DNA from: Auanema rhodensis
Lineage: Eukaryota > Animalia > Nematoda
Direction: 5' to 3'
NCBI GenBank assembly: GCA_964057225.1
Contig: OZ059898.1
Location: 11,532,001 to 11,596,000, forward strand
Length of the DNA stretch: 64,000 bases
Shown: positions 61 through 59,210 of the stretch, piece by piece
Numbering within the stretch: position 1 is the first letter of the stretch
Layout: the number at the start of each line of letters is the position of its first letter
Translations under genes and position numbers: made by a program
Notes under the pieces: model-generated
Seen by the model: the letters and a program-made list of their open reading frames with translations, nothing else
Told to the model about the DNA's origin: nothing
Database searches by the model: none

Positions 61-430
61 CTCAGCATCAGTTTCATTAAGTTTTATGTGAGCTGTAGGA
101 AACAAAAAGTGAGGAGATGCAATCATTAGGTAAGTTATGGCCATCATAATGGCACCTCCCCCGATCCATCTAGCTCGATTACCTCGTGAGCCCAAATATG
201 AAATCAGGAGCACAGAAGGAATATAACCGATATCACCTTAAAACAATAAATGATTTAATTGAACTTAAGTAGATAAGTATACTTGCTGATATCATGAATC
301 CAGAAAACTTGGATGGTATCTGGAATTGCTTCTCAATGTTCTGTATGGCAGCAATGATATAGCTTCCACCGATTGCCTCAAAAAAGTATACGAGAGAGAA
401 CAAAGCGAGGAAAACATATATTCGCTCCAT
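61..430 (-). CDS. Organic anion transporting polypeptide (OATP/SLCO family), first two exons; gene continues beyond the window start
   Basis: Exon 1 (430-283) MERIYVFLALFSLVYFFEAIGGSYIIAAIQNIEKQFQIPSKFSGFMISAS, a 46-nt GT..AAG intron (282-237), then exon 2 (236-61) DIGYIPSVLLISYLGSRGNRARWIGGG. IEKQFQIPS..SG and the ISYxG...R.RWIG.G pattern match the OATP N-terminus. Confidence 0.9.
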
Positions 431-3400
431 TTTGTATGTCGTGAACTAAAAGCAGAAAATTAATAAAAATGAAGAAAATGAAGGAACCTATGAAAAAATC
501 ACTAAGCGATTAATGATCATGGTTTAAAAAATAAAACAGTATTGCCGAAAAACGAGGGAAAATGAGGGAAAAGCAATACATCTTATAGCACTTATACATC
601 ATGATGCCGGTCATCATTCTGTAAATTCGATCAAGAAAATAAGATACAGAAAACATTAATGATCAACACACAAATTGAACTTAAATAGTTGAAAGATCAA
701 TTTTGTCAAGGCGCATTACGGAGTTGTTGGTCTGTCGTTAGCGAAATAGTATCGGTGATTAGGTTCACGGTAAGAGGAACGCTAATGTGGCTAAAGCAGT
801 GAAAATAGGCAAAGACGATCTATGATATGGAAAAGAAACAGGCGTGGACTTATACATATTGAAAAAACCATAAGTCAGGTTCGTTCGGAGTTAGATGCTT
901 AGCTAGTACGATTGAATGAAGGCGACATACATTGAAGTACACGCAAGCCATGTTCTCTATAGTATTTTGCCTTGACTAATGACTTAAATTCATTAGTTTT
1001 ATTTTAAGAATTTTAAACAAAATATGAAAAGAATAGGGGTAAGAGTAAGGGTAGAACAACTTCGAATATGTATTGTTATGTTACAGCTACGGATTCTGGA
1101 TTGGAGAAGAAGTGTGGGGCTATCGTATGAGGAACGCATGAAATGATTGATAATCAAAACGAAATTTTTGACTGAACGATTCCTTTAAATGTAATGATAA
1201 AAAAAGGTGAAAAATAAAAAAAAATAGCATAGATAACATATATCTTTAAACATGTTTTTGGTAGAATCTTTTAAAATAGAAGATGAAACAGCTTCATCTA
1301 GTTGTGTTTCTGGAAATATCTCTCTAAACGGATATAGTAATAGTACTAGAAACTATTTTATTATTATTATCGCTTTCTTCACAAAAGGATATATTTGATG
1401 ATGATAGTTATAGTAAAATGATAAGAAAATGTGATTTTAATGAGAAATATATGAGAAATTTGATGTTTGTATATGAAACAGTACTCATAGAAATAGTATT
1501 TCATCTTTAAAGAATCAAAAAATTGAAATTGAAACACTTTCGTCCTATACCATTGAGGATAGAGAACAATAAGAAAACAAAACAACAGATGAAAATTTGA
1601 AATTTTTGAATCAAGGAAAAAATATTTTTTGAGACTAGCTAGAAAATGTATTTATATCAATATGGTATAAGATGATGAAGAAGATAGACGGTATTTGAAA
1701 GATGAACAGGAATTGCATCACAGATCAGACGGACCTGTATGAGACGATAATCATGATCCAGTACTATCTTTAAAAGGAAGACAACATTGCTCTATCAAAT
1801 CTAATTTATGAAATATCGGCTGAAGAACGATTTTGTCGTTGATCATTGTAGTAGTGATGCAGAACGCTCATTTCACCAACAACCTCAGAATGGTACTTCA
1901 GAAGTTAGGGCTACGATGGCTTTAGCCACACCCTCTTCCCCTTTGAACTTAGTTCTACTTCGTTATGTTCTTCTTGATTCTGTTCTTTATTCGTTTCCTA
2001 GTTTTCTTCGAAGAACACGTCAAAGTCTTTAAATAAAAAACGTCTTACTAACACACAAAAGTTTTGAGATTGTTGACAAGAATTTCACTCGTCAAAAGTA
2101 TTGTAGAGTTAACCGTGTCATATCAATAACTGGTCAGATCAGAAAAAAAAAGATTCAAAACAACGAGCATCTTGCCGGGAAATGGCGATCATTTTAGATC
2201 AAATAGAAATGCCTAAACTTTATCGAATATTTTCTAATATAGTATAACCATTTGACTCTTCTGCATACTGATCGAATGCCTCCAAATTCAGCGAATTCCA
2301 ACACTAGAAAGAAATATTGCTATTACGTTCAAGTTCATCAATTACTGAAAAAAACGTATTTTTTGCTATTCAGATGTTCAGTATGATCTGCACCCATAAA
2401 TGTCTTTACTATCATCTATGCCACATAAGCAGAACCAAAGCTATTTCAGTCTTCTCTCTGATTGACAATTAATCAAGATAATTGATCTTTGAAGAATGAA
2501 GATAAATATGAACTTCTCTAATATTCGTCGAACCTGACCACTGACTTGATAACACACCCGAATATAGTAAATTAAATAACATAATAAGCCTTTAAGAGGG
2601 AAATATTTCTTTGATTATAGGGTCATTAGAAGTAAAAATTTGAAAAAGATTCCGGTTTACTTATTTTATTTCTATGTACTACTATAAATGGCATCACAGA
2701 TCGCCATGGGCAAGATGATCGACCAGGAGATGAAAGACTGTGGTGAGAGAGGAGGAAACCATACAATCATACGAACTGAATTGGGCGAACCGGCATCAAC
2801 ATCCACCATACGGGGTCTTCTCTCATTCTTTTTAAGGTTGTTTCTTCATCATACAGATGAAGAAAAGAATAGAAAGATATAAAGAAATGAGATGTATGAT
2901 GATGGTGCTAGGATGTTCAGAGAAAGAAGATGTAAGAGTCTGCTGGTATGCTACAACTACAAGAGGTAGATCGTAATTCACTTAACGGATAAGACCTGAA
3001 GCATTTGTCTCTGTTTTTCATGCTATACAGTTGAACGAGGACCCTGAACGATGTCATACAAATTGTTGAATTTGGCAAGTAACTTATTGAAAATCACAAA
3101 GCCTGATTCATTTTTTTTACGAACTGCTTTGGTAGCTGAAGAAATTTACATGAGTCAGCTTTCAATGGAATATACAATGCAAGAATAGGGGGAATCATCA
3201 GTTCTTATTATTCTTCTTCAGCAAACACACAATTCCATACCGCAAATCTACTCTTCTGTCAAAAAATAAAGAAAATATGACGTTAGTTAGCAGCCAACAT
3301 CGACCATCTTCGTTAATATTCCAGCAACTTGTGATTGTAGAAGAAGTGAACAAAATCTGAAAATCAAAACGCCCACTGAAGTATGATTTCAATCATTTTT

Positions 3401-7900: not shown

Positions 7901-10039
7901 CCAAAAACGAGAGAGATATTAGATGAGTTATATTGGAAGGCACATGTCGTAAAGCATTCTGCTGTATCCGAAGAGTTTCCAGTGAGCGTAAGTCACATAA
8001 TCGTGTTGGTATATCAGCAAATCGGTTATTACTTAGATCTGAAAAATAAAATTAAAAAAATTGTCGCATTCTATAGCCCATCACGACAACAATTGAATTT
8101 GGATGCCAGATGGCCAGCAACATATGGTTTGGCGACAGAAAAGACGAAAATCACATTGAGAAAAACTAAAACTGTTCACAGGACTGGGCTTGAAGAAACG
8201 GCCAAAAATATAAAATAGATCCACAAAAAACAATGAACGGAATTAGCCTGTATGAGTAAGTCTTCATATGAAGAACAGGACAATTCATGAGACTATTAAA
8301 CCCGATTACTACGTTTTTTTCATACATTCTAGTCTCATATTACCCGGATCATGCAAAATTGAATCAGAGAGATAGCTATTTTTTGTTAGCCACACTTCAT
8401 TTGGTATATCCTATGGTCAGAAACGTCAAAGAAACTTAGAAAGATTCTATGATACATGATAAATGGCAAAATCGTAAGTCCCTTTTCTCGGCATGGAGGC
8501 TCCTAGCCTTGGTTTTTCGCCTCCCCCGGGGAGAGGGCGCTACTGACAGCATTGTCGCTACCAGGCAAACGCATACTCATCTTTCCCTTCTAAATGACAA
8601 AAGAACTTGTCAAATACGACCTACCCTTGAATTAGTAACACCAAGAATCGCTACGAGACATAGCGCATTTCTAAGAATTACATATTCAAACCAATAAGAA
8701 ATGATTCTTAAATCCCCAGGGAGGTATTCAGATGCTTTGCGACAAGAAAAATCCTTTGAACCCTGTTGATGATACTCACGCTTTTTTTTCACTTCTCTCA
8801 GAGAGATATTTTACATAGATATGGATATTTAACTCGGATCGAAAGGAAATCGCAGTGTGATACCAAGGACCAATTGATTCGGAGGCTAATAAAATAATCC
8901 ATTGAGCGAGTTAAATGGCGTCTGCCTTGCGCATCAAATAAATGTAGCAAGCCGGTGTTTACAACATAATAAGAACACGATAAATCTCGACGATGTACAA
9001 GAATAAGGTGGCTCAGCTGGGAAAACAAATAAGAAAGTGGCGGCAAATAAGCGGAAAGGGAAAGTACCAGCTAACTTATATAATAATGTACATAATAAAG
9101 CCGTTGAAGTACATTAATATAAGCAAAAGATGAAATAAAACTCACCAGCAGCAACTATGTCTGAAATGTCGTACTTCTCCGTAAGAGTCGTGGGTAATTC
9201 TTTCAATTGTCTTCCAACTAATGAGAGCACGCCATTTGTTTCTGCTTCTTCAAACATCTTCTCTGTGGAAGCTGATAATTGCTGAAAAAAATATATATAG
9301 TAAATAAAATAAAGAACAATCTAGGAAAAAACCTCATCTGTCATAACTTATAATTTATTTAGAATCAAAAATAAGCTTGGTCAACAACCGAAAAGTGTGC
9401 AAGCAGCTTTTAAGTAAAATGCCATTACGTGGTTTTCACGTATTTATATACTTTATGCTAATGAGGTACAATTCGCGCGTAAAAATAGTATAAATGAGTC
9501 AATGATTGTAAAATGAGAGCAAAAAAAGTGGCAAGTGAGAAAAACGATGCGTATTTGGGATTACAAGGATTACGAATTGCTTGACCAAGCTGCTGTGTGA
9601 TACCAAAAAAGGGAAGTAAAGGCTAAAGGTACTAATGCGGGCTAGGCGTCCAATCGATCGCAGCCTATAGGGTCTGCATAAGGAACTGTTCTCCTTAACC
9701 TCTCTCTCTTCCTCTCTCACTGTTCCTCAATAAGCAATAGGAAGCCCCAATGCATCAAAGCAAACAAAGCTTGTCATAGAAGGAGGTGGCAAGTAGATAG
9801 ATACGCATGATGTCTCACATAAATAGATCTTTGTAATAAGATTATAAAAGAATAAAACGACGACAAAATAATTAAATTATATTAGAAGCAAGCTGACTCA
9901 CCACTTGTTGGTATCGAATGGACGGTGGTAGAGGAACACTATCAGGACTTCTGATCTTCTCGGGCTCTTGCGCAGAAGGTACTGAGACGCCGACTGCGTG
10001 GACGACGTTCCGTCGCTTGCGCGACCAGGTACCCGACAT
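4986..10039 (-). CDS. Leucine-rich repeat and calponin homology domain protein (LRCH family)
   Basis: First exon MSGTWSRKRR... (10039-9901) follows a TTTCAG acceptor. LRR exons include DLSNNRFADIP..., SNNQLSQLP..., DLSYNFLTKIP..., DLSANRFTHLP...NPLQSPP, then GREHVFKWM. A DSGYGS motif lies near 6960, followed by an S/T-rich linker and a C-terminal CH domain ALADGVHLCTLAN...KCKRNVDGFILACKKIGVPE. Stop TGA at 4986-4988. Confidence 0.9.
9472..9479. promoter_or_regulatory. E2F/EFL-1-like TTCGCGCG motif upstream of a putative alternative LRCH first exon
   Basis: TTCGCGCG lies ~130 bp upstream of an ATG ACA GAT GAG|GT mini-exon (9344-9333) on the minus strand. Confidence 0.35.
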
Positions 10040-13000
10040 GAAGTGACTACCCGCCTGAAAAGGTATGAAGTACAGTTAAACAGTAAATATTGGCAGAAGT
10101 TATATAAAGGTATGAGACAGCAAATAAGAGCATGATCACATAGTAAAGCACGAAATCGGAAAAGTCATAAAGTAAAACAGTGTCAGCAAAGGAAATAATA
10201 TGATGCAGAATAATGGAGTGGGAGTGATGAGGTTAAAGCGAATACGATCATCAATCGATGCACGGCTCAGAATAGTATTGGATCAAAAGAATGAATCCGA
10301 TTATTTGCAAGAGAGAATATGAACAAGATGAGCAGCGAACTACCTCATTCCGAAAACTACTGCAGTAGCCAATATGATGCTATAAATCTGATAGTAGTAT
10401 GTTACTCATACAGAACAGAATGAGAGAATTGGATGCAAAGTATAAAAATGAGGGAAGGTGAAAACGGAAAAAGAGGAAACGAGAGAGGAAAGACGAGAGG
10501 AAATACAGGTCTAGGAAAACGGAGAGAGAAGAAGAGGTAACTAATATAAAGAGATCGCCAAAACTTTACTGATATTATTACTATGTTGAAAGAAGCTTAC
10601 AGCAGCTGTTTTTGATCGATGGTACAAGATATAATATGCCAGATGTTTGCCACAGAACGAGAGGCTAATTACCGCACTATGAGCACAGTCACATAATATA
10701 TTAGGATGCTCTTGAAAGACAAGGCAATGGATTGGCAAAAGAAAAAGGAACCGAATGACACATGAACATAAGCTATAACTAGGATGGAAACAACGGTAGT
10801 TATATGAAAAAGAAAACCATCGAAGCATTGGCAAAAGAGGAAATAATGAGGGAAAGAATAAGAAAAAGGAAGGTACCATAAAAAAAACGAAGAAGCTATA
10901 GAGATTGAGAAAAGACATGAGAAAAGGAGACATTATCTTTCTTTATTATCTAAAAAAGATAATCGAAAAAAGAGAGAGAAAATGCCCCTCAGGCTAATGA
11001 AAGTTTGAATAAAGGAGATGATGACAGCATCGTGGATATATAGAGATGAGGATGATAGATGGAAAAAAAGTGTATAAAACGAAAAAAAAGCCAATTGCTA
11101 TATGGAACAAGTATGTCAACGATATGGTCATAGTTTCAAAACAATTGACCAGAAAGATAGAAGGGAGCTAGGCGACTGCAGAAAAATAATGGACGTGTTA
11201 ATCTAATCTTGAGAGATATAGAGAAACATACAAAACTTATCACTAAACATTTCCGATCGGAAACAAATTGGCAGAGAAAGAGAGGATGGTGAGTGAGTGA
11301 GAGTGGATGGGAGATTTGGGGGATAGGCAAAGGACGACAGCGGAGTACAAGATGCAAATTGAGATGAGAACATAGACCAGAATAGGAAAATGGATGTCCA
11401 GTTATAAATATAATGCCCTTCGATTCAGTTTATATGCTTCTTTACGATAAGATGAGGTGTTGTATGTGAGTTAGTAATCAATAACAGGGGGGGACGATGG
11501 GTGGATGGGATGGCTGAGAGTGACGGTTCTGGGCCCTCGTCGGCCACGCCTCCCAAAGATGTTGAAGGAAAAGGAAGAAGATATATTCTTTGTTTCCAAA
11601 AGAAAATTGATAGTAAAAGAGAATGAGAGGCGAGGAGGAAAAAAAGAATAAAAAGAGATATTGAGTCAAATTGTGGATATAGAGAGTGAGAGAAAGAAGG
11701 ATAGGTAACAAAAAAATTCATTAAAAGTCGATTTGTCAACTTCAGGCCGCCATCACTAAGGTTTTAAAGTTTCCTGTCCGTGCTTTATACATTATGAAAT
11801 GGAATTACATGATGTGGAAGAGGAAGAATATTGCTACGGAAAGGCAGAAAAACGAAATATCGGAAGATGTCAGATCAACAAGACATTTAATGTAATTTTG
11901 AAGTTGAAAGTTGTGCTCACAAATTCGAAAAAGAGAATAGCAAACACACGTAATAAGTAATAGATGATAGATAAAGTCGAATGACAAATTGATGATCGTT
12001 TAATTAATGAGAAACATTGAGTTTGAGATGTGATCAACAAAGACAATGAGAAGAAACAAATATTGCATTAGGGATTGTAGAGTGGATTATGTATTTGAAA
12101 ACTAATGATGACAACTTCCTATTCGAGACAAAGTGATATTGTCGTTGGACTGATGTATTGATGGTTGGATGAGGTTGACTTAGTCGACAGGGATTAGAAC
12201 ATGAGAATATTTTCTTGAGACGGCCAAGGCTCTCAAATCTAAGCCCAATAAGTGAGGCAGGCTAAATTAATTTGATTCGGCTTCGCTGCAAAACTTTCAT
12301 TTTCTTTGAACAAAATTATTATGAATATTTGAAACTTCATAGTGCTAAATGGAGAAGGCCAGTTATTGCTAGAAATATTCTGGAACGAGCCCGAAAAAAA
12401 AATGGAAGAGAACAACATTGTGTCCGCTGGTCCCATAATGAGCCTTTAGGAAGTGGGGGTACTAGCTAGTTGGTGACTAAAACTTGGAACTTGACATCAA
12501 AAAAGATTCTTTTAACTTGACTCGTAAGGAATAGAATGTTAGACATCTTGTCAACGAGTAAATAATACAAGACGACCACAAAAATTATATTCTCAAGCTA
12601 CAGCAAATGTCTGAAATGAACGAAATTCGATGCTTGAACCACAGTTTACGGCACATTTCTGCTGCTGCATTTCTAGGGAGGAGAAGATGACTGGGCGAAA
12701 AAAAAAGCTGAAACGGGGCCATGACGTCTGTCATGTCATAATCATCACTATCGTTATGAGAGATCGTTTTTTAAAATCCGACACATTTCTTCTACTTTTT
12801 TTTTGATTTTCCGTTCTCCGCACGTTGCACTAATCTTCTGTTTTTTCGATAGCTTGTTCAGCGCCTAGCCTAAGCATCTTATATATGTTTTCAACATTAT
12901 CCAGCAGCATGATATCTATTACTTAATGAAATTTTAGGACAGTCCTTTACTCTCAATATACATATTACTTGCATTCATAACTTTTAGTTGGCATAATAGG

Positions 13001-13144
13001 ATTGTAGAGTCGTACATAGTAAATTGAAATATGAATACAATCTGAAGAATAATTCAGAAACCATAATAGGATGTGTGATAGAGACGTATAGCACTTTCGG
13101 ACATACTAACACCGACTTCTGAATTTGCAACATTTATGATATAT

Positions 13145-13218
13145 ATCTCTCTCACTCTCTCTCTCTCTCTCGTTATGGGTGCATTTAATTTTCTTCTATT
13201 ACTCTTTCTTTCTCCCTT

Positions 13219-13249
<31 letters not shown>

Positions 13250-13250
13250 T
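13145..13250. repeat. (CT)n microsatellite tracts
   Basis: Visible CT dinucleotide runs. Confidence 0.85.
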
Positions 13251-17854: not shown

Positions 17855-18998
17855 TTAAGCTTTAATAGGTTGTATGAGTTCATCGAATAGATCTTCTCGC
17901 AATGGCTTCCATTTCAATTCCATTTTGGTTGAACCATCAACTGTTTTCAATAAAAAATTTCCGTCTTTATCTTTCCATTCATTATAATGAAGAGTAAGCA
18001 ATGTCTGGAAAGTTTTTTTCTTATTTAAAAATAAAATAAGAAAATCATCTTTACCTGAAAACCTTCTTTATCTAAAAGTCTTTGATTAGCAACAGAAGAT
18101 GTTTCAGATACCATACCATCAACGTTATATCTCTTAAAAATTTATAAGATTAGGTTTGACACTGAAATAACTTCGAGTATTATTGAAATACCTTCACTAG
18201 ATTACGATTCATATAATACTTTTGCATTGTTGATCCAATTCCTTTACGTTGATGTTCCCGAGCTACGCTACTCATTTCACTGAAAGACGATGAAAAGTAC
18301 AAAATGAGAGAGTACTTCTGATGTTTTACCGATGAAGTACTCTATGAACAGTTGGATCAACCATTTTCCAAAATGAATCATGAACAATGTTTGTAACTTC
18401 ATCTGAGATTTCAGTTATTAGTTTGTTAGTTTCTCCATATTGTTACCATGAGCTGCAGCCACAATATCAGTTCGAGTACTAGTATCATAATATGCTTCAG
18501 GTTCTTCATCTCTCAACCATAAAGAGCAAAGTAACACTCCTACCAAGCTACCGCTTACTGGAATAATAGTACAAAGTTTAATCTTCTTAGAAATGTCCTT
18601 GGTTCTTTGGCATAAAATGCCATATACAGTTGCACTAATGATGAATTATTCACAATTGAACTTCGATACATTGAATTTCAAAAATACTTCTTTAGAAATT
18701 ACAACAGAATATTTTTGAAAATAGCATGTTGTCAACTACCTTTACACCGGCAAACAACAGATAGTTCATCCTGTAAACATCGGTCAAGAATAACTTTCAT
18801 GACTGGCTTAAAGTCAACATCACGAATATTAGCGGCCTGAATTTCGTGTTAAACCAATTCTTTTCGACAATTTTTCTTTGCATAATATTGGTTAGAACAA
18901 CATACTCTATTCAATGGTTCATCAAAAAGATAATATTTCAAAAGAAATTCTTCGATTTCCAATCGATCTGACAATTCGGCGAAACGAAAATCGTACAT
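17855..18998 (-). CDS. GNAT-family N-acetyltransferase (arylalkylamine/dopamine N-acetyltransferase-like)
   Basis: Spliced product MYDFRFAELSDRLEIEEFLLKYYLFDEPLNR|AANI...GSLVGVLLCS...EMSSVAREHQRKGIGSTM...SETSSVANQRLLDKEGF...IKA*. It has the AANAT-type DEPLN motif and the acetyl-CoA motif QRKGIG. Confidence 0.88.
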
Positions 18999-20133: not shown

Positions 20134-23100
20134 TTAAATTAGAAATCGGAATGCGAAGCATGATTCAATGAGTGCCTGAATTTGTGTGCATGAAGCTTGA
20201 GGGAAATATCTGCAAAGACAAAGTTTAGTTATATATTCTCTCAATCTCATCTAGAACCTCTTAGCTATTTGGCAATTTCGTTGTGTCCATTCAGATGGAT
20301 CAGTGATCTTGAAGACTCTGGTAAACTTGTTGATTGCAGCACACTGAAATTCCGAATGAAATTAATTCTATTTTTAGGTAATAGAGTACTGTTGTGAGTA
20401 ATATCAAAGCTTATATTCGTACTTAGAAGAAATTTTGAAATTTTGATATGAATTAGTAAACTTTGAGAATTTCAATTCACATGCTGTACACTTATACATG
20501 CGTCTATTTTTACATCCAAAAGATTAAACAACATCTATTTCATATTATTTTCAATAATATGGATTTCAGAAAAATAGGAAGAAGGCTAGATTTCAAGTTG
20601 CTGTTTCAAGCATTTACCTGAGCTGGTCGGAGACGATATTTCACACGTTCAGTTGTTGTAGATTCAGGAGTAGTTGTGATTGATCCGAAAACTATTTCTT
20701 CTTGTTTTTCCTTAATCAAGCGGACACGTTCCTTTAAATTAGAAAATATGTTAACAACTATTCAGATAATACTAAACCTCTTCCAATCGTTTATGTTGTA
20801 AAAGGAGCTCTTGTTGACGTGCTTCAGCTTCACGAAGAACCTCAGATCGTCTTTTCATGTCTTGTTCTTGAGCCAGCATTTCGTCTCTCCAACGATTCTG
20901 TCTTTCCTGCTCTTCAACTTCATTTTGGCGTTCACGAGTTTCTTCTTCTTGCTTTATCTGAAACAAACTCAGTTGACTCGCATTGTCTTTGAATATTACT
21001 TGTTCAGCCTTGATACGTTCATCACGTATTTGTTGCTCATACTCAGCGGCTTCCTTCAAAGCTTTATTGGCTTGCATTCTTCTGATTTCACTGATTTTAG
21101 ATATTTCTGATTCAACTGGAGCAACAACAACAGGGTTCAACTCATTTGGTGGTGTTACAGTTACTTCACTAGTCAATTGGACATTTCTGAACATGATGCC
21201 AATTAAACACTGAGTTAAATAAAGCTTACGATGGAGCTCCAAAGTTGGGACTAATTAGTGGAGCTTGATGTTGTTGGAATGTCTTGGTTGCTTCTCCAAT
21301 CAATCCAGAGATAAGAGAAGTGATTGGATCTTGGGATACAGATGGAGGCATATTATGACTGAAATAAGAAACAATTTGTTTTGCAAGTTGAAAAGAAGAG
21401 CTTACTCAATGGTTTGATCACCGAAGTTGGATTTTTTAAATTGTTCTCTAGCATTTTCAATGGCAAAGGAAAGAGCTGGTGATTCATGAGTTGTTACCTC
21501 GAATACAGATGGGGCTGTGGTTTCGGTAATGCTGGAATCATCATCTTCTACATCATCATTGTTTGAGGACATGGTGATGAAAGCAGGACCAGAGTCGTTA
21601 GCCTTCTCTTCTTCGGTTGTTGTGGTTTCTTCAGCCTCAGTAGTTGTTTCAGGTGCTTTTGTGGTAGTGGTCTTTGGAGCCTTGGTTCGGTTTTTACGAT
21701 TTTTCTTTGTTATTGGAGCAGCAGTTGTTGTTTCTTTCTCTGTAGTTTCATCCTCTGTGGTTGTGGTTGCACTTTCAGTGGTGGTAGTAGCTTCGGTGGA
21801 GGTTGCAGCTTCAGTGGTGGTAGTAGCTTCGGTGGTAGTAGCTTCAGTGGTAGTTGTTGCTTCAGTGGTAGTTAGGTCTTCAGTAGTAGTAGCAGCTTCA
21901 GTAGTAGTAGTAGCTTCAGTGGTGGTAGCTTCGGTAGTGGTGGTAGCTTCCGTTGTAGTTGGAGCTTCAGTGGTAGTAGTAGCTTCCGTGGTGGTAGTAG
22001 CCTCGGTGGTAGTAGAAGGAATTTCAGTAGTAGTTGTTGTAGCCTCAGCTGTGGTTGTAGAAGGCTCCTCAGTGGTTGCAGCAACAGTAGAAGAAGCAGT
22101 TTCAGTAGTTGTTTCGATAGTAGTGGATGCAGTTGAGGTTTCTTCATGTATAGTATCATCTTTGACATCTTTGGCATTCTTTTCTTCATGTTTCTTCTTC
22201 TCTTGGTCTTCCAATCTCTTCTTGCTTTGTTTTAAAGATTCCAACTTGTTTTTCAATCGTTTTACAAGTTGACGCCAACGTTCAGGAAGGACCTTGAATA
22301 AATATAATTTCATTTGAATCTATTGTTTGAACAACTTACAACTTTAGTTACTGCACGACTTGTAGATGTTGTAGTTTCAGTTTCATCTGCTTTTTCAACA
22401 TCTGTAATAGGATAATGCACAAATGTACTCTCTTGATTCTTACCAGCAGCTTCTGTTGTAGTTTTTACTTCAGATTCTGACTTCTTTTCAATGTCAACAG
22501 GCTTTTTAGTTTCCGCGCTATCAAGAGATGAAGAAAATTCTGGCTTTTCAACTTTCTTTTCGGATTTTTTCTTCTCAGCCTTTTCAGTCGTGGCTACTAC
22601 TGATTCAGAAGTAGTGGTAGATGTTTGTTCATCTTCAGTTGTTGTTTCAACAGCAGCTGCACTTGTTGTAGATGGTTCTTCAGTCGTTGTGGTAGCAGGT
22701 ACATCCTCAGTAGTTGTAGTTTCAGATGTTGTTGAAGTTGGTTCTTCTGTTGTAGTACTTGTTGCCTCAGTAGTTGGCTCAAGTGTAGTGGTAGTAGTAG
22801 TGGTTGTCGTCTCTACAGTTGTGGTAGAACTTTCAGTGGCAGAAGTAGTTGGAGCCTCAGTAGTAGTTGTAGTAGTTTCAACTGTGGTTGTGGTTGGAAT
22901 AGTTGAAGTTCCTGTTGTAGTTGGTACCGTGGTGGATACTGTGGTAGTTGGAACAGTTGTAGTTTCAGTTGTGGTTTCAGGAGTCGTCTCAGTGGTGGTG
23001 GTACTAGCTTCAGTTGTGGTGGTAGTAGAAGTAGTAGTTGTTTTAGTTGGCTTATGCTTAGTAGTCTTGTGTTTAAATGCAGAAGTTTGAGAGTGTGTTG

Positions 23101-26675: not shown

Positions 26676-28283
26676 ATGGTTGAACGAGATCCACAAAAAG
26701 TCAAAAAGTATGAAGAATTTCTGAAACGGCATATGGTTATTAACAATACACTGAATGATCAACAGGTTCATCCATTTTTTTTTTAAATTTGTTTATATAA
26801 AATTTAAAAAAATTAAAACAAAAGTTTTTCAAAAACAAAAAGAAAATTTGTAGATTTCTTATGAACGTGATGAAATAATTAATTTATGTAATGATGTATT
26901 GCCTCTAATCAAGAAAGATGAAATGTTAGCTGTTATGAGTCCTCCGATTGTAGTTGTTGGAGATATACATGGCCAAGTTAGTTGCTTCTATTCTGAATCA
27001 TATAAATCATTTTCAATATTAAATTTGTTTTATTTAAGTATTTTGATCTTTTACGATTATTTTCTTTATTTACAAAAGATTCTGTTCATGGAATCTATAA
27101 TATGAAGGTTTATAATACTTTATTATACAATATAATTATTATTTTCTTGTTTTAGTATGTTTTTCTTGGTGATTATGTTGATAGAGGAAGTCGATCAATT
27201 GAATGTTTATCTCTCATACTAACCTTAAAATTTCTTTTTCCAACTAAGGTTCTAATCAAATTTACAATTAAAATTATTTAAAGAATTAAGTATACCTTAC
27301 TGAGAGGCAATCATGAAACTCGTAGTATTAATCGTTTTTATGGATTTTTTGATGAAATATCAGCTCGATTTCCCGTTGAGGTATTATATTATTGTTTTGA
27401 ATACTTTAATTACATTCTGAATCACATGATTAAGGCAGATGCAGTGATGATTTGGACAGCTTTTAATGAAGTTTTTGATTGGATGCCTATTGCTGGTTTA
27501 ATTGGTAAGAAAGTTCTATGTATGCATGGTGGCTTATCACCTCTGCTAACTTCACTCGATGATATTCGTCAGGTTATTTCATATTTAGTTATATCTTTCT
27601 TAATTACTTTTAACATACATGTCCGGCTTAAGATCAATTCTTTCTTACTTTTCAGTTACCTCGTCCATTGGTTGATCCGAGTTATAACCCTTTAGCATTA
27701 GATATTCTATGGGCTGATCCTGCTCCAAACTTCAAAGGGTAATCAAAGAGCAACCAGGTGACATTTCGTGAATTATGAATTTCAGATTTGCACAAAACGT
27801 TAACAGAGGAATATCATGCATATTTGGAGATGATGTAATCAAGAAAACCTGTAAACGATTAAAAATCAATTTAATTGTTCGAGCTCACCAGGTCTTTCCC
27901 CATATTATGACGTCAGAATTATGTGTAACATATTATAATTAGGTTATGATGGGAGGCTACTCGTTCTTTGCTCAAAAGCAATTGGTCACTGTTTTTTCGG
28001 CTCCACGATATCAAGCTGAGGTGCTTGCACGCTACCAAACACTTCCTCATCCATCTGTTTTCAGGCGAATAGAGGAGCCGTTATGGTTATAAACAAAGAT
28101 GGAAAATACACTTTCAAGCTGTTGAATCCACGAGATCCTCCTGAACCAGTAGCAGCAATAGCATCAGCTGAACCAAAGACAGAAGTAACTCAAGGAAAGA
28201 CAACAATTACATGTGATGCAAGTATATCAAAAACAACTGTAACTCCAACTACAAGTACACCTCCAACAAAAAATGAAAAATAG
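26676..28283 (+). CDS. PPP-family Ser/Thr protein phosphatase (divergent PP1-like, nematode-expanded type)
   Basis: Ten exons giving GDIHGQ, GDYVDRG, LRGNHE, CMHGGLSP, DILWADP, IVRAHQ and VTVFSAPRY motifs, plus a T/P-rich C-terminal tail. Confidence 0.93.
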
Positions 28284-29840: not shown

Positions 29841-31318
29841 ATGACTGCAAAACTTGAATGCTATTTCAATCCCTATCCTGCATATTATATTTATTCTTTA
29901 TATGGTCTCGGGTGCATTTCAACTCCAATCAGTATCTTTGGAATGTATTGTATCTTAAAAAAAGTAATTATATTCACTAATTATGCAGATTATATGACTC
30001 ATTTCAGACACCGTCACATCTTAAAGATTATAGAAAAACCTTATTAGTTTATGAAGTATCTGTGTCATGCTTAGATTTTTTTATTTCCTTCATATGCACT
30101 CCAGTTATATTTTTACCTTTTCCATTAGGATATGAGGCTGGACTAGTATCATTATTCGGAGTTGAATCCATGGTATAAACTTGAAGTTTTTATTGAGAAA
30201 TCCTGACGAAAACAACAAAATTTTAGATATTATTGGCTGTACTTTTAATTATTTTAATCCAAGCATTTTGTGGTGTACTTCAACTATTTCACTACCGTTT
30301 GATGGTCATTTTACCACCTAACAGTAGATTCAGGGTAAATTATTGTCTCAAAAGGCTATTTTCAATTATATTTTCGTATTCAGTGGAAAAAAGGAACTGT
30401 GATTGCTATGCGATTTGTCATTAGTTTTATCTCGATCGCACCTATTTGTGCTTTACTTTTATTTTATCCAGAAACTGATCGTGAAGCTAACATTGCTGCT
30501 CTAAAAGAGGTAAATTTGGATTTAAGATCTCAGATTATATTTTTGATTTAATTATTTTCAGAAATATACATGTGTAGAAACTTTACTAAATTTTCCACCA
30601 ATGCGTATAACCGATTCAAAGTTATCCAGGATTATGTATCTGTATGTCGGAGTCGTAGGTATTGAGAGAGTTATTTTGAATTTGTGTTCATCATCTAGTA
30701 TTAAGGTTTGAGTTTATGGGTTATTGGCTTATCTTTAGCATTAAAAACTCATTTCTTGATGAAAAACATGCATGCCATATCAGAAAAGACGTTACAACTC
30801 CAGCATAAGTTCCAAAAAGCATTAATCATACAGGTATGTTCTATAATAATAGTTGATTAGAAAATAAATAAAATTATAATTTAAACATTTGGCATTCATC
30901 GAATTCTAATCATAAAATGTATTTTTAGACACTTATACCAGTTATTATTATTATTATTCCTGGTTGGGCTATGATTATTGTATTTCTTACGGACGATATA
31001 GCACCACAATGTTAGTTGAATCATTCATATTTACAAATTTCTTGAAAAATAAAAATAGAAAAATAAGAAAATACAGTACATTCTTTACGTTCATGTATTT
31101 CAGATTGTACAAACCTGTTCATGGCTTCTTTAGCTGTTCATGGATTATCCGGAAATATTGCTATGATCTTATTCAACACAGAATATTTAAGATTTGCCAG
31201 ATTAACACTGCATCGAATATTTGGTTTTGTGAGTAAGCCACGTGATCAAAGTACAATGAGTTCAATAGCACCGCCTAAAGAAGCATTTGCCACAAACTGT
31301 AAGTTCAAACAATCATAA
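29841..31318 (+). CDS. Serpentine 7TM chemoreceptor, srh-like (Str superfamily)
   Basis: ISTPISIFGMYCILKK|TPSHLKDYRK, TP.IFLP.PLGY..G, LFHYR, SEKTLQLQHKFQKALIIQ and HGLSGNIAMILFNTEY. Seven hydrophobic segments across short GT-AG introns. Confidence 0.88.
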
Positions 31319-33397: not shown

Positions 33398-35801
<2,404 letters not shown>

Positions 35802-37511: not shown

Positions 37512-39189
37512 ATGTTGTATGGTTCAAGTTCGAAATATACAAAAGCGGAAAGAAGTTTGCAACGAATGGAAACAATAGAAAGAAAAGAACGGGAAAGTAG
37601 AAGAGTCAGAAAAAGTTTTTATCAATTTAGTATTGTATTCATTTCTGTTATGTTTCAGTAACACAGGGAAATTCTTCAAGTGACGAAGACGAGCCTCCAA
37701 ACAAAGCACCTTATGAGTAAGTTTCTATTTTATGTTTAAGTTGTATTATGTTCAATTCAGTACCAAACTTATTCAAACTATACCTGAAATATGTGTCGAG
37801 GAAGGGAATAGCGGAGATGAACTCATAACAGATTGTAATGGTATGCTCATGTTCCAGTACTATATATGATTTTTTCTTTTCAGTTGATCCTCCCATTGCA
37901 CCACCTAGGCGTAATCAACGGTCTCCATTACCGAATGTTTCCTTTCGTTAGTATTTTACTATTTTGTCCTCTTTATCAGATGTTTTGCAGGAAAACAGGA
38001 TTCTTCTAGTGGTAACGACCCTGTTGAAAAAGTTTCAATCGATTTGGGTGCTGAAGAAGGTTTTCTATAATCCTATTCCATATTCATATAGCAAATTTTC
38101 CTAGAATCTGGAGAAAGTGGAAATGATTCAGATTCTAGTACAAGTAAATGGATTAAGCGGGTACCTGATGTAATTAGAAATAGGTTTATTTGTATTATAA
38201 GTGTATAATTGTTATTTTCTTTAAAGGTTCCGGAAAAATCCCAATTCCCCAGCTAGTGTCTCCAAAGTTCCAACTGAAGATGCTACATCTGAAACCAGTA
38301 GTATATCAGCTTGGAGTCGTATTCGTGGAATTGTTCCTAATCCTTTAAAATTCAATAGATCGAATAGTAATGGCTCTACACCGAACGGTTGGTGTTTCAA
38401 AAGTTTTAAAAGTTTCCTTATTTCTTTAATTTTTAAGAAATTGATGTGTTGCGTCCTGATTTCACCAATACATATGATTGTAAAGATCCTAAAAAAGCTG
38501 CTCAAAGAGCGAAACGTGATAAAAAAGAATTAACTAAACGTGTTCGTTCTCGTATAAAAGCGGAGTTAAGGGTTGAAGCAGAAAAGGAAAATAGGTTAGC
38601 ATTGTTTGTTTTGTTGTATAGTTAAAAGTTACAATTTGAGACGTAAAAAGGTAACGGATTCTATTGAGCTCCTCTTGCAATTGCTAAGAATGATGGCTTC
38701 TTTCATGATATTAGTAAGCTTATTAAATCATCGAGATATATTCATTGTATATTTGATTTAGATTGGTAATATTCGCAAAACTTTCATTCCTGCACAGTTC
38801 AGATACTTAAAACCTGGACAACATCCATATGACAATTATGAACTTTTGCTTGTGTTTAGGTCAGAAAACATAATTTTCGAATATCTGAATATTATTTTTT
38901 CAGGGTTACAACATTTTTAGATATTTCTATGTTTTGGACAAATATGATGTGGGTGTACTGTCTTCAGTGGCATCTATGTATCCGACTTGGATTTTTCAGA
39001 TTTTGGGCTTGGCTTTCACTTCTTGTTACGGTAAAAAAGTTTATTTAATATCTTTTGTATTTGTTAATCTTTAAGATTGCTTTGGTTGTTATGATTATTC
39101 CTATGGCATATGCTATGGACCAAATGGACTTAAGTTGGTGTGTTTTCTTACCCGAAAGTCCTCTTCACAAGTATCAACCTACATGGTAG
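37512..39189 (+). CDS. Uncharacterised membrane protein: long S/E-rich disordered N-terminus, basic coiled coil, 3-4 C-terminal TM helices
   Basis: About 12 exons join in frame via short GT-AG introns. The C-terminus reads IELLLQLLRMMASFMILIGNIRKTFIPAQFRYLKPG...FLDISMFWTNMMWVYCLQWHLC...FWAWLSLLVTIALVVMIIPMAYAMDQMDLSWC...QPTW*. Confidence 0.75.
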
Positions 39190-51555: not shown

Positions 51556-51599
<44 letters not shown>

Positions 51600-51617
51600 T
51601 CACTCTCTCGCTCTCTC
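51556..51617. repeat. (CT)n microsatellite
   Basis: Long CT run. Confidence 0.92.
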
Positions 51618-52227: not shown

Positions 52228-55200
52228 ATGCTACCTGACAACTTGTATATTCCTATTATTCTTATAGTTTTAAATATTTTGTTGGATAGCTGCCAAGCTG
52301 CTTCATCATGTCCTGTTCCAGCCAGTGGTCGTCCAAAATATTGTCGAAGGTAGTAAAACAAAAAAAAAATGAGAAAAAAGCCTAGACACGGAAGTTATAT
52401 ACTTTTAGCCACATTTTCAAGCATCTTCTGAGAAATATAGGAGCTTGATGCTTATGAGGCTGCTTATGCTTTCGCACTAATCTACCTACCTTTTAGAGAA
52501 TGTTCAGCTGATGATGATTGCAAAAAACATAAAAAATGCTTATGTGATGGAGAATGTGGCTCAAGTTGTGTTAATCCAGGTACGTGCTTTTCGAACATTG
52601 GTTTTGTGTCATCGTTCAGCTTTTCTTCTTAAGCTTCAACTTGTCATGCTCTTCAAGAAATTGAAAATGGATTCTTTCGAACAGCAGGAGAGCTAAAGTA
52701 ATATCAGAAATGATTTTATTTATAATTTGAATTATATTCATCTAGATTTGGATCAAATGCCGAGTATTCTTGTAACAAAGGATATGTGCTTATTGGGCCT
52801 AGTCAACGACGATGTCAAGGAAATCGAGAATGGAGTGGAGCTCAGCCAATTTGTCGCTTACAACGTTTGTTCAAAGCTTCCAAAACAAATTTTTTGTTTT
52901 AAACCTTTGGAACATTTTTATTTTTTTTCAGTGAAATGTGGACCACCGCCAGAAATTCCGTATGCTATACATGATGGAGCATCATATACAGGAGAATATG
53001 ATCTTGATGCTGAAGTAACATATTCATGCGTACCTGGATATCATAAATTTAATTCAAAAGTAACCGTATACCCTTATATGATAATTTAAAAAAAAACTTA
53101 TTCAAGGGATTAGCTTTAGCTAAATGTTTGTTAAATAGGAAAAACATTGCTCAATGGTTTGGCCCCGAATTGAAATGCAAAGGTAGATAAGTTGATTATG
53201 CTGTTATACATATATAGATAAAAAGAAATATTTGTATGTTATAGCTAGATCATGTCCTGATCCTGGAAAACTTGAAAATGGCTTTCGTGAAGGTGAAGTA
53301 TTTGAGTATCCACATACAGTTGCTTACTCTTGTGCTCCTGGATTTTTACTATTTGGGCCGACAACGAGAAAATGCGAGAGTAACGGCGAATGGACAGAAG
53401 AACAACCTGTTTGCAAAGGTTTTCAACACATAAATTATTCTTAAAATATCTAGTTATCAACATATGCTTATGAGAATATATAATGCTGTAAAATTTTTAA
53501 AAGAATTATTTAAAAATGCAGCCGCTTCGCACTAAATTAACATATAAAATAACAGAATAGGTTGACGTACGTATATTCACGTAAAATAATAATATTATTG
53601 ATTATATAGATTGATAGATAGATAGATAGATAGATAATACAAAAATATAATTTAATGATGATAATGAAAAGAAGAGAAATTTTAATTTTTTTAAGAAAAT
53701 TTGAAATTTTTAGCAACTGAATGTCCGCGACCACCTGATCCATTATATGGAAGAGTTTTGGGTACATCACTTACATATGAATCAAAAGTTACTTATGAAT
53801 GTAAAGAAGGATATAGGTTAGTTTTAGAATTTTAAAATTTATCAAAAATAAAAATAAATTCTGCAGATTGGTGGGACAAGTTGAACGTACGTGTATGGCT
53901 GAAGGATTATGGGCTGGCATGGAGCCGAAGTGTGAAGGTAGCACTGTTATGTACGGTAGAAAATATTTTTGAATTTGGTTATTTGACACAGAAATTCGTT
54001 GTCCACCTTTACCAAATCTGGAAAATGGATATATTGAAGGTGGAGAATCATTCTATGGAGCTACAGCTACTTTTAGGTGTAATTTAGCAAATATATAGAA
54101 TAGACTAATTGAATGCTTGTATAGATGCTTGGAAGCTATGACTCATATAGGTGCTTCTGAAGCTAAATGTCTTGAGAATGGTCAATGGAGCCATGCAGTT
54201 CCACGTTGTCTTGGTAGGAATACAATCTATTAAGGATTATATTTGAATATATCTGTTTGACAGGATCATGCAAAGTTCCAAGAATCGAAAATGGAAAAAT
54301 AAAAAATAAAATTAGCGATCAGCTTGTTCAATCAGGTTCGTCAAGATTTTCATATTTTGTGAAAAATTTTTGATATTCTTTAAGGAAATATTGTTGAAGT
54401 TGAATGTGATAATAAGTATGAAACTAATATGAAAAATAAAATGAATTGTCATAATTCAACATGGAGTCATGTACCTATTTGTACTCCTTGTAAGTAAATT
54501 CTTAATTATTATCTTATAATATTCAAATATTTGAGTGAATTGTCATGATTGGCCACCAAGAGTTCCACATGCTCGTATATTATTTACTAAATCATCACAT
54601 GGAGCTGTTGCTAAATATGAATGTAAGAGTGGGTAAGTTGATAAATTTATTTTTCTCTTCTACTCAATACGATATTTTTGTTTTTATTTTCAGTTTTTAT
54701 CCGAGTACAGATGCTCAACAGCGTATAAAATGCTTATATGGTCAATGGACAAGAGAAGGTCCAACTCTTAGATGTCTTCCAAGTTTGTGATTCCTAAATT
54801 TTCTCGATAAACATAAACTTATAGCTTCATGTGAACATCCATCAAAAACATTTGGAACACTAGTAGGAGGCCAAATATTGCTCGAAGGTCAAATGGGAGC
54901 ATATGATTTTGCTCACTATATCCAAAAGTAAATTCAAATTTTCAATGAATAAAGTAATATAATTAATTTTTTTTTCAGAGTAGAACAAGGTCGAGCCATT
55001 GTATTTCAATGTAATAAAGGAAATTATTTGATTGGTAAGATTAATTATTCCAATTCATTCATATACGAATATCATTGTTAATTGAAGGAGCTCCGAAAGC
55101 TTCATGTGTAGATGGTGAATGGATGCCTAAGGTTCGACCAAAATGTGTTTCTCAAACACATCCTATGATTGAAGGACGAATCACATGGGATCGTAAGAAA

Positions 55201-58200
55201 AGAGAATTACAATGTAATTTCTTTAACTCATATTACTTTCAATTCATAATTTGATGTTTAAGATATTAATCGATTTGGCAGATATCGTCGAGATACCAAC
55301 TGCCCTATTCTTGAATCAAATGCCGAGCGTACGGTAATTCAGAATCAAGATGATAGTATCACTGTAAGTTTTTAATTACATTTGAACTTTATTTTTGAAA
55401 ATAATAAGATATTCATTGTATGAAACATTAATATTTTTCTGTTTTTTTTCTGTTTTCATTGTCTCTAATCTCATTTTTTCGTTACAAACCCTTATGCTTA
55501 AACTCAGCTTATAAGCGTATGCTAGAACTTGAATTCAATGATTTGTTAACAAATTCTTAAGTAAAATTCTATGATAGGATCATTCTAAAGTAAAACAAAA
55601 ACAACAAAAAGCAGTGAGCAAGGTTTGCCTCACATACAGCATTTAGATCGTTTGCAGGGAAGGCCATGAGTTCTCAGCAGAGTTTATGGATGGAACATCA
55701 ACATGCATACAAGGCAACTGGACTCCAGCTATTAAGAAATGTTATCCCAGTGAGACTTTAACCATAAAACAATCTCTCAAATAAGCTGAATATAATATTT
55801 TATATAATTATAATTGAAAAATATAAATATTATATATCATATAGTATTTTTTTTTTATTTGAAAAGAGAAGAAGAAAAAAGAAAAATTTGAAAATAATAT
55901 CGAAGAAGATAAATAGATTGTAATGTGAATTTGTTGTTAATCAGCAGTTTCTTTAATGAAATTTGAAGAAAAACATAAGATTTGTCTATAAAAACTGTCA
56001 AACAGATCTGAAATTCATACAATTATTCAGTTTTCGAAGATTTTTATTGTTTAGAGTCTTGTCGAATACCAGTCCGTTTACATGTGTTCTTCCTCAAGTT
56101 TAAAAGTTCTGAAATACTTCAATCAAATGATGTAATTGAACATGGAACATCAGCTAATATGGTTTGTTTACGAGGTTTTCATCTTATAGGTATATCATAT
56201 ATATATTTATTCATTATTTATATGTAAATAATATTATTTTAAGGTAATGGCTTTCTTGAATGTGATCGAGGTAATCTTGTTACTCAACTTGGTAATTGTT
56301 TGCCGCGTAAGTTTTAAGTTTAAGTTCAATAACATGCTCATAACTTTTTATTTTTCTATTAAATTGTATTATAGAAGAATGTAGTTTACCTTCATTAGTT
56401 GTTGGAACATTTGAGCCACATAGAAGAAGTGTATCTGATGGACAAGTTATTCAAATGAAATGTCCTTCATTCATTATGAATATTACATGTTCAAAAGGAA
56501 TATTATCACCACATCCAAGTTGTTTAACCAATGGTATACTATACAAAAACTTTTATTTAACTATATCATATAAACTTTAATTTATTGACAGCTACATCAT
56601 ATTGTGTTCCACCAAGAGATTCAACACCAGCTCTGATATATCGTGTTGTTGGAGTTAAACGAACAAATCTTGATCGCTATCAAGCTGTTTATCCAAATGG
56701 AACTATTTTTCAATATAAAGTATGATCTCTTTACTTATATCACATGACCAGTTTTCTTACTAAGTGCGTCGAGAACCGAGAAGAAGCCAGTGGTATTCAA
56801 TGTATAAATGGCCAATGGATTAGTAACTTATTACCTTGTGGTATGCATAACTACTAATAAACTTAAACTTAAACCTGAACATGCTGTTCTTTCAGTTTCA
56901 GCTAATGCTACTGAACTAGCTTTACCAACAGCACATGATATGTGTACGATTCCACAACTTAATTCATCATATCGTATAATGAATATTGATAACTATATAA
57001 GAAATGATGAACATAAATTCTCGCATGGAACTATTCTATTGGTTTGTTTGTTTGTTTGTTTGTTTGTTGATTAGATCATTTTAATTTTTATTTATATTCA
57101 AGTTTAACTTAATTAAAACATTTTTTATAAGTTGAAAACTTTATTTAGATTGGATGTGCTATATCTGGTGATATTTCAAGAACTATTGAATATAAATGTC
57201 GTCGAGGTAAATGGAGTAAAAAACGACAAGTCAACTGTTCATTTGGTATTTCTATTATTCTTTTTTAATTTTTAAAATAAAATTCCAGAAAAAGAACCTT
57301 GTGAATATAAAGTTCAACTTAATTCTCATATTGTGGCTTATGATGTTATGAAAAAGGAAAATGTTTTATTTAATGATTTCTTTAGAGGTTTGAAACAAAT
57401 CAAAAATTATTAATTTGTGGGGAACCTGCTAAGCTTATTAGCTTCAACTTTTTAAAACTTATTGAACTTAAGCTCTATTCCCTGAGGATAATCTCAATTT
57501 AAACTTTAAGTTGCAAAAGTTTCATCTTTCAGAAGGATCGAAGTTATCATTTCGATGCTCTAATGTAGGAAGTGAGATCTTAAGAGGTAATCGAGAACTT
57601 CAATGCATTAAAGGAAAGTGGTCAGCATCAATACCATATTGTATTCCATTAGATCCTTTAGCTAATAGTAAGATTCACTTCAAGTTTACATAAAATATCA
57701 ATTTTGTATCAGATGAAGTTCCACCTATACAGTATGATGTTGACGATGGAGCATATTCTATAACACCTAAAGGTGATTTGATTGTCAGTCGCAGCTCTAC
57801 TATCATCTTTTCATGTTTGGTTCCCAAAAAAAGTGGAAAACCAACCTGGGTAAAACTTTGTAAGCATACTCTGAGTGCTTAAGTAGTGCTTGTTTAGGAG
57901 CACTCTTCAACATATCGTTCATACGCTCAGCAGTGGGATACTGTAAAAGCTTTTGGTCATCTTAGTTTAGATGCTTATCAGGTTTTTTCCGTTTATGAAT
58001 AAAATTAATTTGAAAAATTGAATTCAGTTAACTATTGCTGGTGCGCAACGAGAAGATTCCGGTTTAGTTCATTGTGTTCTTCCAAATGGAAAACGAAATA
58101 CTCTTAAATTCTCTGTTGATGGTATGATTCTAAGATATTGAATTTGATGAAAAAACAAATTTTGTTGTAGTTGAAACATGTAGTCCTCTTCGAAATTCTT

Positions 58201-59210
58201 CACATCTTTATGTTTATTTTACACATCGAAGCTTCTTTATTGGTACTGTAGCACAATTCTCTTGTCCAGTTGGATATCGAATACATGGATCATCTACTTC
58301 GACCTGTCAAGCAGATGGAACATGGACTCATGTTGCTCCTAAATGCCATGGTTTGACCATGTCTCCTGATTATCTGTCTCTTCAATTGAATTTATAGCAG
58401 CACAATGTGCGCCTTTACCTGTTGATGGTACAACACTATCTGTAACTGTGACATCTTACAAGTTTGGAGGAGTTGCTATATTTCAATGTGCAAAAGGGTT
58501 AGAGCTTACAACATTCCAACTTAAAAACTTATTTTTTTCAAGTTTTACTCTGATCGGAGCTGAACATATTCATTGTACCAGTGATGGTGTATGGAGTGAA
58601 AAAATTCCTCAATGTGTAGGTATGCCAGTTGAATATAAAATATTTTTTAAAATTATCTCATCTCTGTTTGAAGTTGTGAAATGTGGACCAGTTATTCCTC
58701 CAAAAAATGGATTTATAATTGGTTCTATCAAAGATCAATATCAGAAAGGAGATATAGGTTTGTTATTATAAACTTTCTCACAGCTTAGAATCAACTTTGT
58801 AGCATTATTTGGTTGTCTTTCCAATCATTTACTCACGGGAGGCGATTTCGCAATCTGCCAATCAACAGGACGTTGGAGTCAAGTTGTAACCAAATGTAAG
58901 CTATAATCCGTTAATTTATGTTTTATTTTAATATAATTAATAACTAAAATTCACGTAGGCGATGCAATTTGTCGACATCCTGGACGTCCACTAAACGGGG
59001 ATTCAACAGCACCTGCTAAGGTTTGAATATTTATTTTTATCAGAAAACGAAATATTTTTGTTTTAGGATTATTATTTAGTTGGAGAAAAAATAGTTTTTT
59101 ATTGTCCGTCACCTGAATATAAGCTAAATGCTGAAAATGTATTAACTTGTATTTCAGCAGGCAAATGGTCAAGAAAAGTTCCATTATGCTTACCTGATTC
59201 GCGTAACTAA
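52228..59210 (+). CDS. lev-9: LEV-9-like secreted scaffold: signal peptide, WAP domain, many CCP/sushi domains, furin sites, Ig-like domain, further CCPs
   Basis: WAP domain [27 protein letters not shown], CCPs ([15 protein letters not shown]...[17 protein letters not shown]), [21 protein letters not shown], then continued in-frame exons including an Ig-like segment (FSC...W...EDSGLVHC), ending [10 protein letters not shown]. Confidence 0.9.
53613..53636. repeat. (GATA)n intronic microsatellite
   Basis: About 6 GATA units. Confidence 0.85.
57042..57066. repeat. (GTTT)n microsatellite at an intron 5' end
   Basis: About 6 GTTT units starting at the splice donor. Confidence 0.85.

Follow-up and report, generated by a model that had tools for sequence, protein, structure and literature searches.

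AAG-ending introns and a loosely kept -3 base at predicted 3' splice sites of the nematode Auanema rhodensis

How is the end of an intron chosen when the base in front of its terminal AG is free to vary? The question is raised by a 64,000-nucleotide stretch of the nematode Auanema rhodensis (C6:11532001-11596000, in an assembly of 180,911,798 bases with chromosomes of about 24 Mb), referred to below as the window. Many small introns in its genes, among them a plk (polo kinase) gene, a PP1-type phosphatase gene and a large gene of CCP/sushi modules, appear to end in AAG, and a few in GAG, in place of CAG or TAG (YAG). A first-pass annotation of the window had listed 25 such acceptors and had suggested that this lineage defines its acceptors largely by distance from the donor and may have splicing factors of altered specificity. 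Our gene models indicate that the AAG acceptors are real and terminate about one-fifth of the tiny introns. We infer that the cause is probably relaxed selection at the -3 position on ordinary U2-type machinery, and not a changed factor.

Support for the non-YAG acceptors

Genes were predicted with a purpose-built dynamic-programming (DP) procedure that chains exons, with codon usage, donor quality and the lengths of the introns contributing to its score; its training sequence was the window together with 150 kb taken from three other chromosomes. To avoid circularity, the acceptor requirement was 'AG' alone and positions -3 to -7 were never scored ('neutral' DP). The window has a GC content of 31.6% and a median predicted intron of 45-48 nt; the corresponding values in a 2019 paper on A. 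rhodensis are 32.2% and 47 bp, and the same paper puts the median exon at 109 bp. All frequencies reported here rest on our own gene models over about 180 kb, in which acceptors are known from DNA alone. This lends some weight to an explanation of the AAG ends as artefacts of the models, with true splicing at nearby YAG, at non-AG sites or between other exons, and unfiltered predictions do contain false calls.

All of the 25 listed coordinates proved to be AAG or GAG on the strand assigned to them, to within 1 nt. The neutral DP recovered 22 of them as intron ends, and the other three (237, 39075 and 38640) were settled by hand from reading frames and stop codons. Most AAG sites have no in-frame CAG or TAG within 30 nt, which argues against misplaced YAG splicing. 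Three sites (30705, 55087 and 38640) do have in-frame alternatives, as an artefact would allow. Support is weaker at the first two. The 47-nt intron 30659..30705 of the srh-like gene (plus strand, ending GTATTAAG) was called by the neutral DP and is not fully forced, one alternative donor/GAG pair being available. The 53-nt intron 55035..55087 of the CCP gene (plus strand, ending TAATTGAAG), also called by the neutral DP, ends at the earliest AG that is 40 nt or more from the donor, and further in-frame AGs lie downstream.

Exons were also compared one at a time with Pfam hidden Markov models (HMMs) and PDB chains. Many exons matched no family in the single-exon Pfam searches, and the Sushi and Metallophos matches were too short for exact junction placement. 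Three AAG acceptors of plk on the minus strand (35323, 34147 and 34903) were residue-exact by Pfam or PDB coordinates. At the 44-nt intron 35323..35366 (ending TGTTTAAAG), the match to Pkinase HMM positions 46-106 closes with the final residue of one exon, and that to 107-133 opens with the first residue of the next. The exons flanking the 43-nt intron 34903..34945 (ending TTTTAAAG) correspond to residues 184-220 and 221-261 of human PLK1 chain 4j52_A. Likewise, the 43-nt intron 34147..34189 (ending CTTTTAAG) divides POLO_box HMM positions 1-13, which reach the exon end, from 14-61, which start at the next exon's first residue. Introns ending TTTAAG and ATTAAG were also seen in actin genes of chromosomes 1 and 6, between ..PIYE|GYALP.., ..SKR(G)|ILTLK.. 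and ..ALAP(S)|TMKIK.., and the Pfam Actin coordinates are contiguous across them. These three plk and three actin junctions are difficult to reconcile with artefacts.

A congener provided independent support. An actin that NCBI annotates in Auanema sp. JU1783 (P0024) can be placed exactly on its own locus, and three of its six introns end in AAG; in a neighbouring gene, rebuilt under the annotated protein length, AAG ends three of eight. A length-constrained version of the DP, given annotated gene ends and protein lengths, reproduced the JU1783 actin exactly. The same version was ambiguous on Caenorhabditis sp. 36 (11 C, 4 T, 4 A and 1 G, with purine calls that had no U-tract), and these numbers were not used. 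Auanema sp. JU1783 shares the AAG trait. Where introns of the JU1783 actin and of an A. rhodensis actin (L005) coincide in position, the -3 base differs (A vs C, T vs C, A vs T), which looks like drift in what is a tiny sample. A literature search found no published description of AAG acceptors in Auanema, and the public gene models of JU1783 already contain AAG ends. That an NCBI annotation made independently of ours uses them speaks against an artefact of our models, an explanation that we consider very improbable on all of this evidence and on the base composition described below. As a separate observation on the A. rhodensis actin genes, three of them are clustered at C1:16633536-16641877, as a tandem pair with a third gene in the opposite orientation, and the tandem copies have an identical 47-nt intron ending TTTAAG.

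The first-pass annotation had called GAG as well as AAG pervasive. This was an overstatement for GAG, which makes up 1-3% of acceptors vs 19-25% for AAG and is therefore rare. GAG is indeed forced at 54535, as had been claimed: it is the sole AG of the 46-nt CCP-gene intron 54490..54535 (plus strand, ending ATATTTGAG), and a CCP module would lose its first Cys if the next in-frame AG were used. A second GAG, at 38640, had been thought likely and fared less well. In the 46-nt intron 38595..38640 of the gene labelled TM (plus strand, ending ATTTGAG), a purine at -3 is forced, because the frame (..AEKEN|RRKKVTDSIELL..) continues only via the GAG at 38640 or an AAG at 38628. The GAG itself is not forced, although its rival would give a 34-nt intron, shorter than any other in the set. 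The annotation had also noted that the in-frame AAG at 52633 is used although a TTCAG lies 14 nt upstream, and this holds in our models. The 54-nt CCP-gene intron 52580..52633 (plus strand, ending TTCTTAAG) restores the frame only at the AAG; use of the TTCAG (52615-52619) would leave a 40-nt intron, a frameshift and a stop. Some low-level splicing to the skipped TTCAG may occur, its product being cleared by nonsense-mediated decay (NMD), or the TTCAG may be too near the branch site.

The -3 base, its context and intron length

Among the predicted introns of the window of up to 120 nt (n=116), the -3 base was C in 50 (43%), T in 35 (30%), A in 27 (23%) and G in 4 (3%). A filtered set was drawn from several chromosomes, in which both flanking exons were coding-like, the donor score was positive and the intron did not exceed 100 nt (n=191). 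Here T was found in 81 (42%), C in 70 (37%), A in 37 (19%; 95% confidence interval 14-26%) and G in 3 (1.6%), so that TAG was at least as common as CAG. The introns without any other in-frame acceptor (n=95) gave T 43, C 32, A 19 and G 1. These values bear out the earlier statement that the -3 position is far looser than the near-invariant C of C. elegans, with C at only 37% and A at 19%. Relative to the unused AGs within introns, C at -3 was used 2.65x, T 1.21x, A 0.53x and G 0.11x. After correction for composition the preference is C > U > A >> G, which is the canonical order.

A pyrimidine tract precedes the acceptors: T occurs at -7, -6, -5 and -4 in 54%, 64%, 80% and 62% of introns, compared with 43% in the intron interior. 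At -5, T was present at 81% of AAG, 76% of CAG and 78% of TAG sites (all about 80%), vs 43% for unused AGs in the same introns. False calls would have diluted this signal, which the DP did not score; as it is undiluted at AAG, the AAG calls can be trusted, and the artefact explanation loses further ground. On the exon side, A plus G made up about 70-81% at +1. G alone stood at 37-38% at YAG and at 57% at AAG sites (57% vs 38%, p = 0.04), figures that include any effect of coding constraint. The donor matrix derived from the predicted introns is AG|GTRAGT-like, with G at -1 in 64%, A or T at +3, G at +5 in 50-60% and T at +6 in about 50%. The introns are accordingly predicted to be of the ordinary U2-type, GT-AG class.

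The context of the AAG ends also bears on whether they are weak, regulated acceptors (alternative, coupled to NMD and perhaps of a germline type) as opposed to constitutive ones. The C. elegans germline uses weak non-consensus acceptors that depend on U6 m6A (PMC4484395, PMC11347140), and the frame-shifting TTCAG upstream of 52633 would fit such a scheme. Like the A. rhodensis sites, the proximal weak acceptors of the C. elegans germline (Ragle et al. 2015, PMC4484395) depart from TTTCAG, and intron length has an influence on them. They differ in having no U-tract and in being alternative, whereas the A. rhodensis sites keep the full tract and, in our models, bound constitutive core exons. AAG ends fall within actin and within the catalytic core of the polo kinase, and errors of splicing there would ruin the protein. 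There was moreover no link to donor strength, donors of AAG introns not being stronger than others (p = 0.69). Regulated use as a general account of the AAG ends is in our judgment improbable.

Intron lengths were uniform, with 5th, 50th and 95th percentiles of 41, 45 and 65 nt and a mode of 42-45. In 178 of 189 introns (94-95%), no AG lying 40 nt or more from the donor came before the one used as acceptor, and 42 AGs that would yield introns of 30-38 nt were skipped. Position therefore does much of the selecting. No branch-point consensus was detected, CTAAY occurring at -10 to -26 in 10 of 177 introns. The idea that acceptors are set by distance from the donor was thus partly sustained. The uniform lengths and the first-AG rule agree with it, but the modal length is 42-45 nt and not the 45-55 nt proposed, and the U-tract centred on -5 has the same strength before AAG as it has before CAG or TAG. 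A more radical version would have intron ends chosen mainly by a ruler, which would settle on the earliest AG that lies about 40 nt or more from the donor and follows a U at -5, with the U2AF35 read-out of the -3 base almost dispensable. We think this doubtful. If it were true, the roughly 20% of AAG ends would be one facet of a position-based rule, and Auanema would be a natural system for 3' splice-site choice with minimal reading of the AG context.

Splicing factors and probable relaxation at -3

The first-pass annotation had suggested that U2AF35 or second-step factors may have altered specificity in this lineage; on this view U2AF35, SLU7, PRP8 or PRP18 would have changed so as to accept A, and sometimes G, at -3. 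Several points agree with such a change: AAG makes up about 20% of acceptors, TAG is as common as or commoner than CAG, and human and yeast U2AF35 S34F/Y mutants gain AAG use (PMC7505975). The U2AF35 gene was missed by a Pfam zf-CCCH search and was found at C4:14.294 Mb by a degenerate DNA pattern for GACRHG(D/E)xCSR. Its zinc finger 1 (GACRHGEKCSRTH) was aligned with that of S. pombe U2AF23 (GACRHGERCSRKH) and its zinc finger 2 (CRQHEVITCSKGGFCNFMH, CRQHE...) with the yeast counterpart (CRQHETSECQRGGLCNFMH). Against U2AF23 chains 4yh8 and 7c06, His29, Cys33, Ser34, Arg35 and the Q157-equivalent glutamine are unchanged, and there is no substitution in the pocket; positions adjacent to it do differ from yeast (K for R32, T for K36), which would be compatible with altered specificity. 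In U2AF23-RNA structures His29 provides the stacking surface for the -3 base, Cys33, Ser34 and Arg35 read it, and the Q157-equivalent residue adjoins -1 and +1 (PMC7505975). Wild-type U2AF23 binds UAG best and CAG and AAG about 3-fold more weakly, and rejects G; only S34F/Y flatten the preference (PMC7505975).

The A. rhodensis sites follow the wild-type order, with G at 1-2% and A at 0.53x its availability, and not the flat A/C/U preference of S34F/Y. The cancer-associated S34F/Y mutants of human U2AF1, in which AAG and CAG sites gain in use, are similar to Auanema in their appreciable use of AAG; in Auanema, however, Ser34 is intact and A is still disfavoured relative to availability. S. pombe U2AF23 (7C06/7C07) shares the pocket residues, and its best site, UAG, is in line with the Auanema order of use, T >= C > A >> G. 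It differs in that Auanema favours C most after composition correction, and factors beyond U2AF35 binding must therefore contribute, as in human cells. U2AF65 (U2AF_lg exon matches, collinear at C3:13.609-13.611 Mb) and SLU7 (Slu7, C7:8.670 Mb) each occur as one ordinary gene. The zinc-finger alignment, in which the -3 pocket and the Q157-equivalent are kept, therefore gives no support to altered factor specificity, and at the acceptors G is still rejected and A under-used. We rate a changed factor as an improbable cause.

These data are read most economically as relaxed selection at the -3 position, in a genome whose introns are AT-rich and minimal in length. Introns of A. rhodensis are near-minimal and uniform (41-48 nt), and a short U-tract centred on -5 would presumably serve as the U2AF65 site. 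Position and U-tract together would already identify the acceptor. The -3 base could then be left to drift under AT-biased mutation, filtered only by the intrinsic C > U > A >> G preference of a normal U2AF35 pocket and of the second-step active site.

Five points weigh against relaxed selection. Conservation of the pocket would not prove that the specificity of U2AF35 is unchanged, particularly as neighbouring residues differ (R32K; T for S. pombe K36). The excess of G at +1 of AAG sites hints at some compensation, so that the -3 position may not be wholly neutral. Some false DP calls probably remain, the unfiltered set having 6-7% G vs 1-2% after filtering. The models are built from DNA, and usage of each site may vary, with nearby sites perhaps serving as alternatives. 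Finally, the contrast with C. elegans is drawn from published wording ('relatively invariant UUUCAG/R', 'almost exclusively cytosines') and not from numbers.

With that limit, the comparison with the C. elegans UUUUCAG/R acceptor, read by UAF-1/UAF-2, is instructive. In both nematodes a short U-tract abuts the AG, conservation is highest for the U at -5 (80% here), no branch-point consensus is seen, introns are tiny, and U2AF35 and U2AF65 are present. The C. elegans -3 C is near-invariant, whereas in Auanema C is at about 37%, T at 42% and A at 19%, and the Auanema U-tract is looser (T 54-64% at -7, -6 and -4). If selection at -3 is indeed relaxed here, the strictness of C. elegans acceptors would be a Caenorhabditis peculiarity and not a nematode rule, and a U-tract with a tight length rule could carry acceptor choice while the -3 base drifts. 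Gene finders and aligners trained on the C. elegans TTTTCAG would misplace about one-fifth of Auanema intron ends, and probably also ends in AT-rich related rhabditids, so this lineage needs its own acceptor model. Auanema has reportedly been transformed, and acceptor swaps with C. elegans would therefore be a practical way of asking what enforces C at -3.

Immediately beside the U2AF35 gene, which ends near L033:2358, lies a gene for an RRM protein with its ATG at 2500, about 140 nt downstream on the same strand (L033:1363-2985; C4:14293025-14296056). We take this arrangement to resemble the operon layout of C. elegans uaf-2 with an RRM-cyclophilin gene.

Remaining introns and other features

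The other AAG introns of the window are described here by gene. On the minus strand, the 46-nt intron 237..282 of the OATP-like gene ends TTTTAAG; the flanking open reading frames join only at this site (..FMISA|S|DIGYIP..), and the sole other AG would leave a 17-nt intron. The 59-nt intron 18133..18191 of the GNAT-like gene (minus strand, ending TTTTTAAG) was called by the neutral DP and has no YAG alternative. Two introns of the dpy-6-like gene, both on the minus strand, were likewise called by the neutral DP: 20732..20777 (46 nt, ending TTTAAAG), for which the sole alternative is a downstream AAG, and 22293..22339 (47 nt, ending TTATTCAAG), which lies between exons of 409 and 295 aa, with a very high coding score on both sides. 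At 20952-20999 on the same strand, the DP called an AAG end that has an in-frame TTTCAG 6 nt upstream (TGTTTCAGATAAAG). The two form a candidate adjacent pair of alternative acceptors, such as have been described from the germline of C. elegans.

The PP1-type phosphatase gene on the plus strand has three AAG introns. No alternative exists for 26977..27038 (62 nt, ending TATTTAAG) or for 27249..27290 (42 nt, ending GAATTAAG), both called by the neutral DP, and the exon after the latter starts ..LLRGNHE... The third, 27381..27434 (54 nt, ending TGATTAAG), is bracketed by the gap in the alignment to PDB PP1, and the two CAGs that follow it by 4 and 10 nt would break the frame. In plk a fourth AAG intron, absent from the first-pass list, was called by the neutral DP at 34304..34348 (minus strand, 45 nt, ending TGTTTAAG), with alternatives only through a poor donor. 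The gene labelled TM (plus strand) has three AAG introns in addition to the GAG case. Of these, 38184..38226 (43 nt, ending CTTTAAAG) and 38388..38437 (50 nt, ending TTTTTAAG, no alternative) were called by the neutral DP; 39031..39075 (45 nt, ending TCTTTAAG) has an in-frame stop inside the intron, and its sole other AG would give a 9-nt intron.

The CCP gene (52441-59202 of the window, plus strand) has at least 35 exons, about 1,300 aa and about 20 CCP/sushi modules after a WAP-like exon. The 'lev-9' label given to it earlier is doubtful because the gene is far larger than the 8-CCP LEV-9. Its intron 53066..53106 (41 nt, or 47 nt with the donor at 53060) ends TTATTCAAG with the same acceptor for either donor. 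Four further AAG introns were called by the neutral DP: 54336..54384 (49 nt, ending TTCTTTAAG), followed by an exon that matches Sushi HMM positions 25-56, 55214..55262 (49 nt, ending TGTTTAAG), 56190..56243 (54 nt, ending TATTTTAAG) and 56720..56764 (45 nt, ending CTTACTAAG). There is no alternative for 58498..58542 (45 nt, ending TTTTTTCAAG), and the next exon matches Sushi HMM positions 33-56 from its first residue. At 58620..58673 (54 nt, ending CTGTTTGAAG) the sole YAG alternative (+18) would remove the first Cys of a module. A 693-nt 'intron' in our model of this gene (55364-56056) probably hides an exon near 55655-55765, and a (GATA)n microsatellite (53608-53640) lies within a 295-nt intron.

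Elsewhere in the window, about 9 kb (8000-17000) are strongly purine-skewed on the plus strand and have no convincing coding exons; the long open reading frames of the minus strand in this region are low-complexity runs of Phe, Leu and Ser. Outside the window, the C2 contig has 11,383 bases. In the block C1:5000001-5050000 (L007-L011) no gene was predicted. The blocks C3:7000001-7050000 (L012-L016), which is mostly retroelement, and C4:8000001-8050000 (L017-L021) contain retroelement-like open reading frames (676-1,537 aa), joined in the C4 block by PGDSGPRSS... repeats in tandem. The content of these three blocks may relate to the repeat-rich DNA that A. rhodensis eliminates from its somatic cells.

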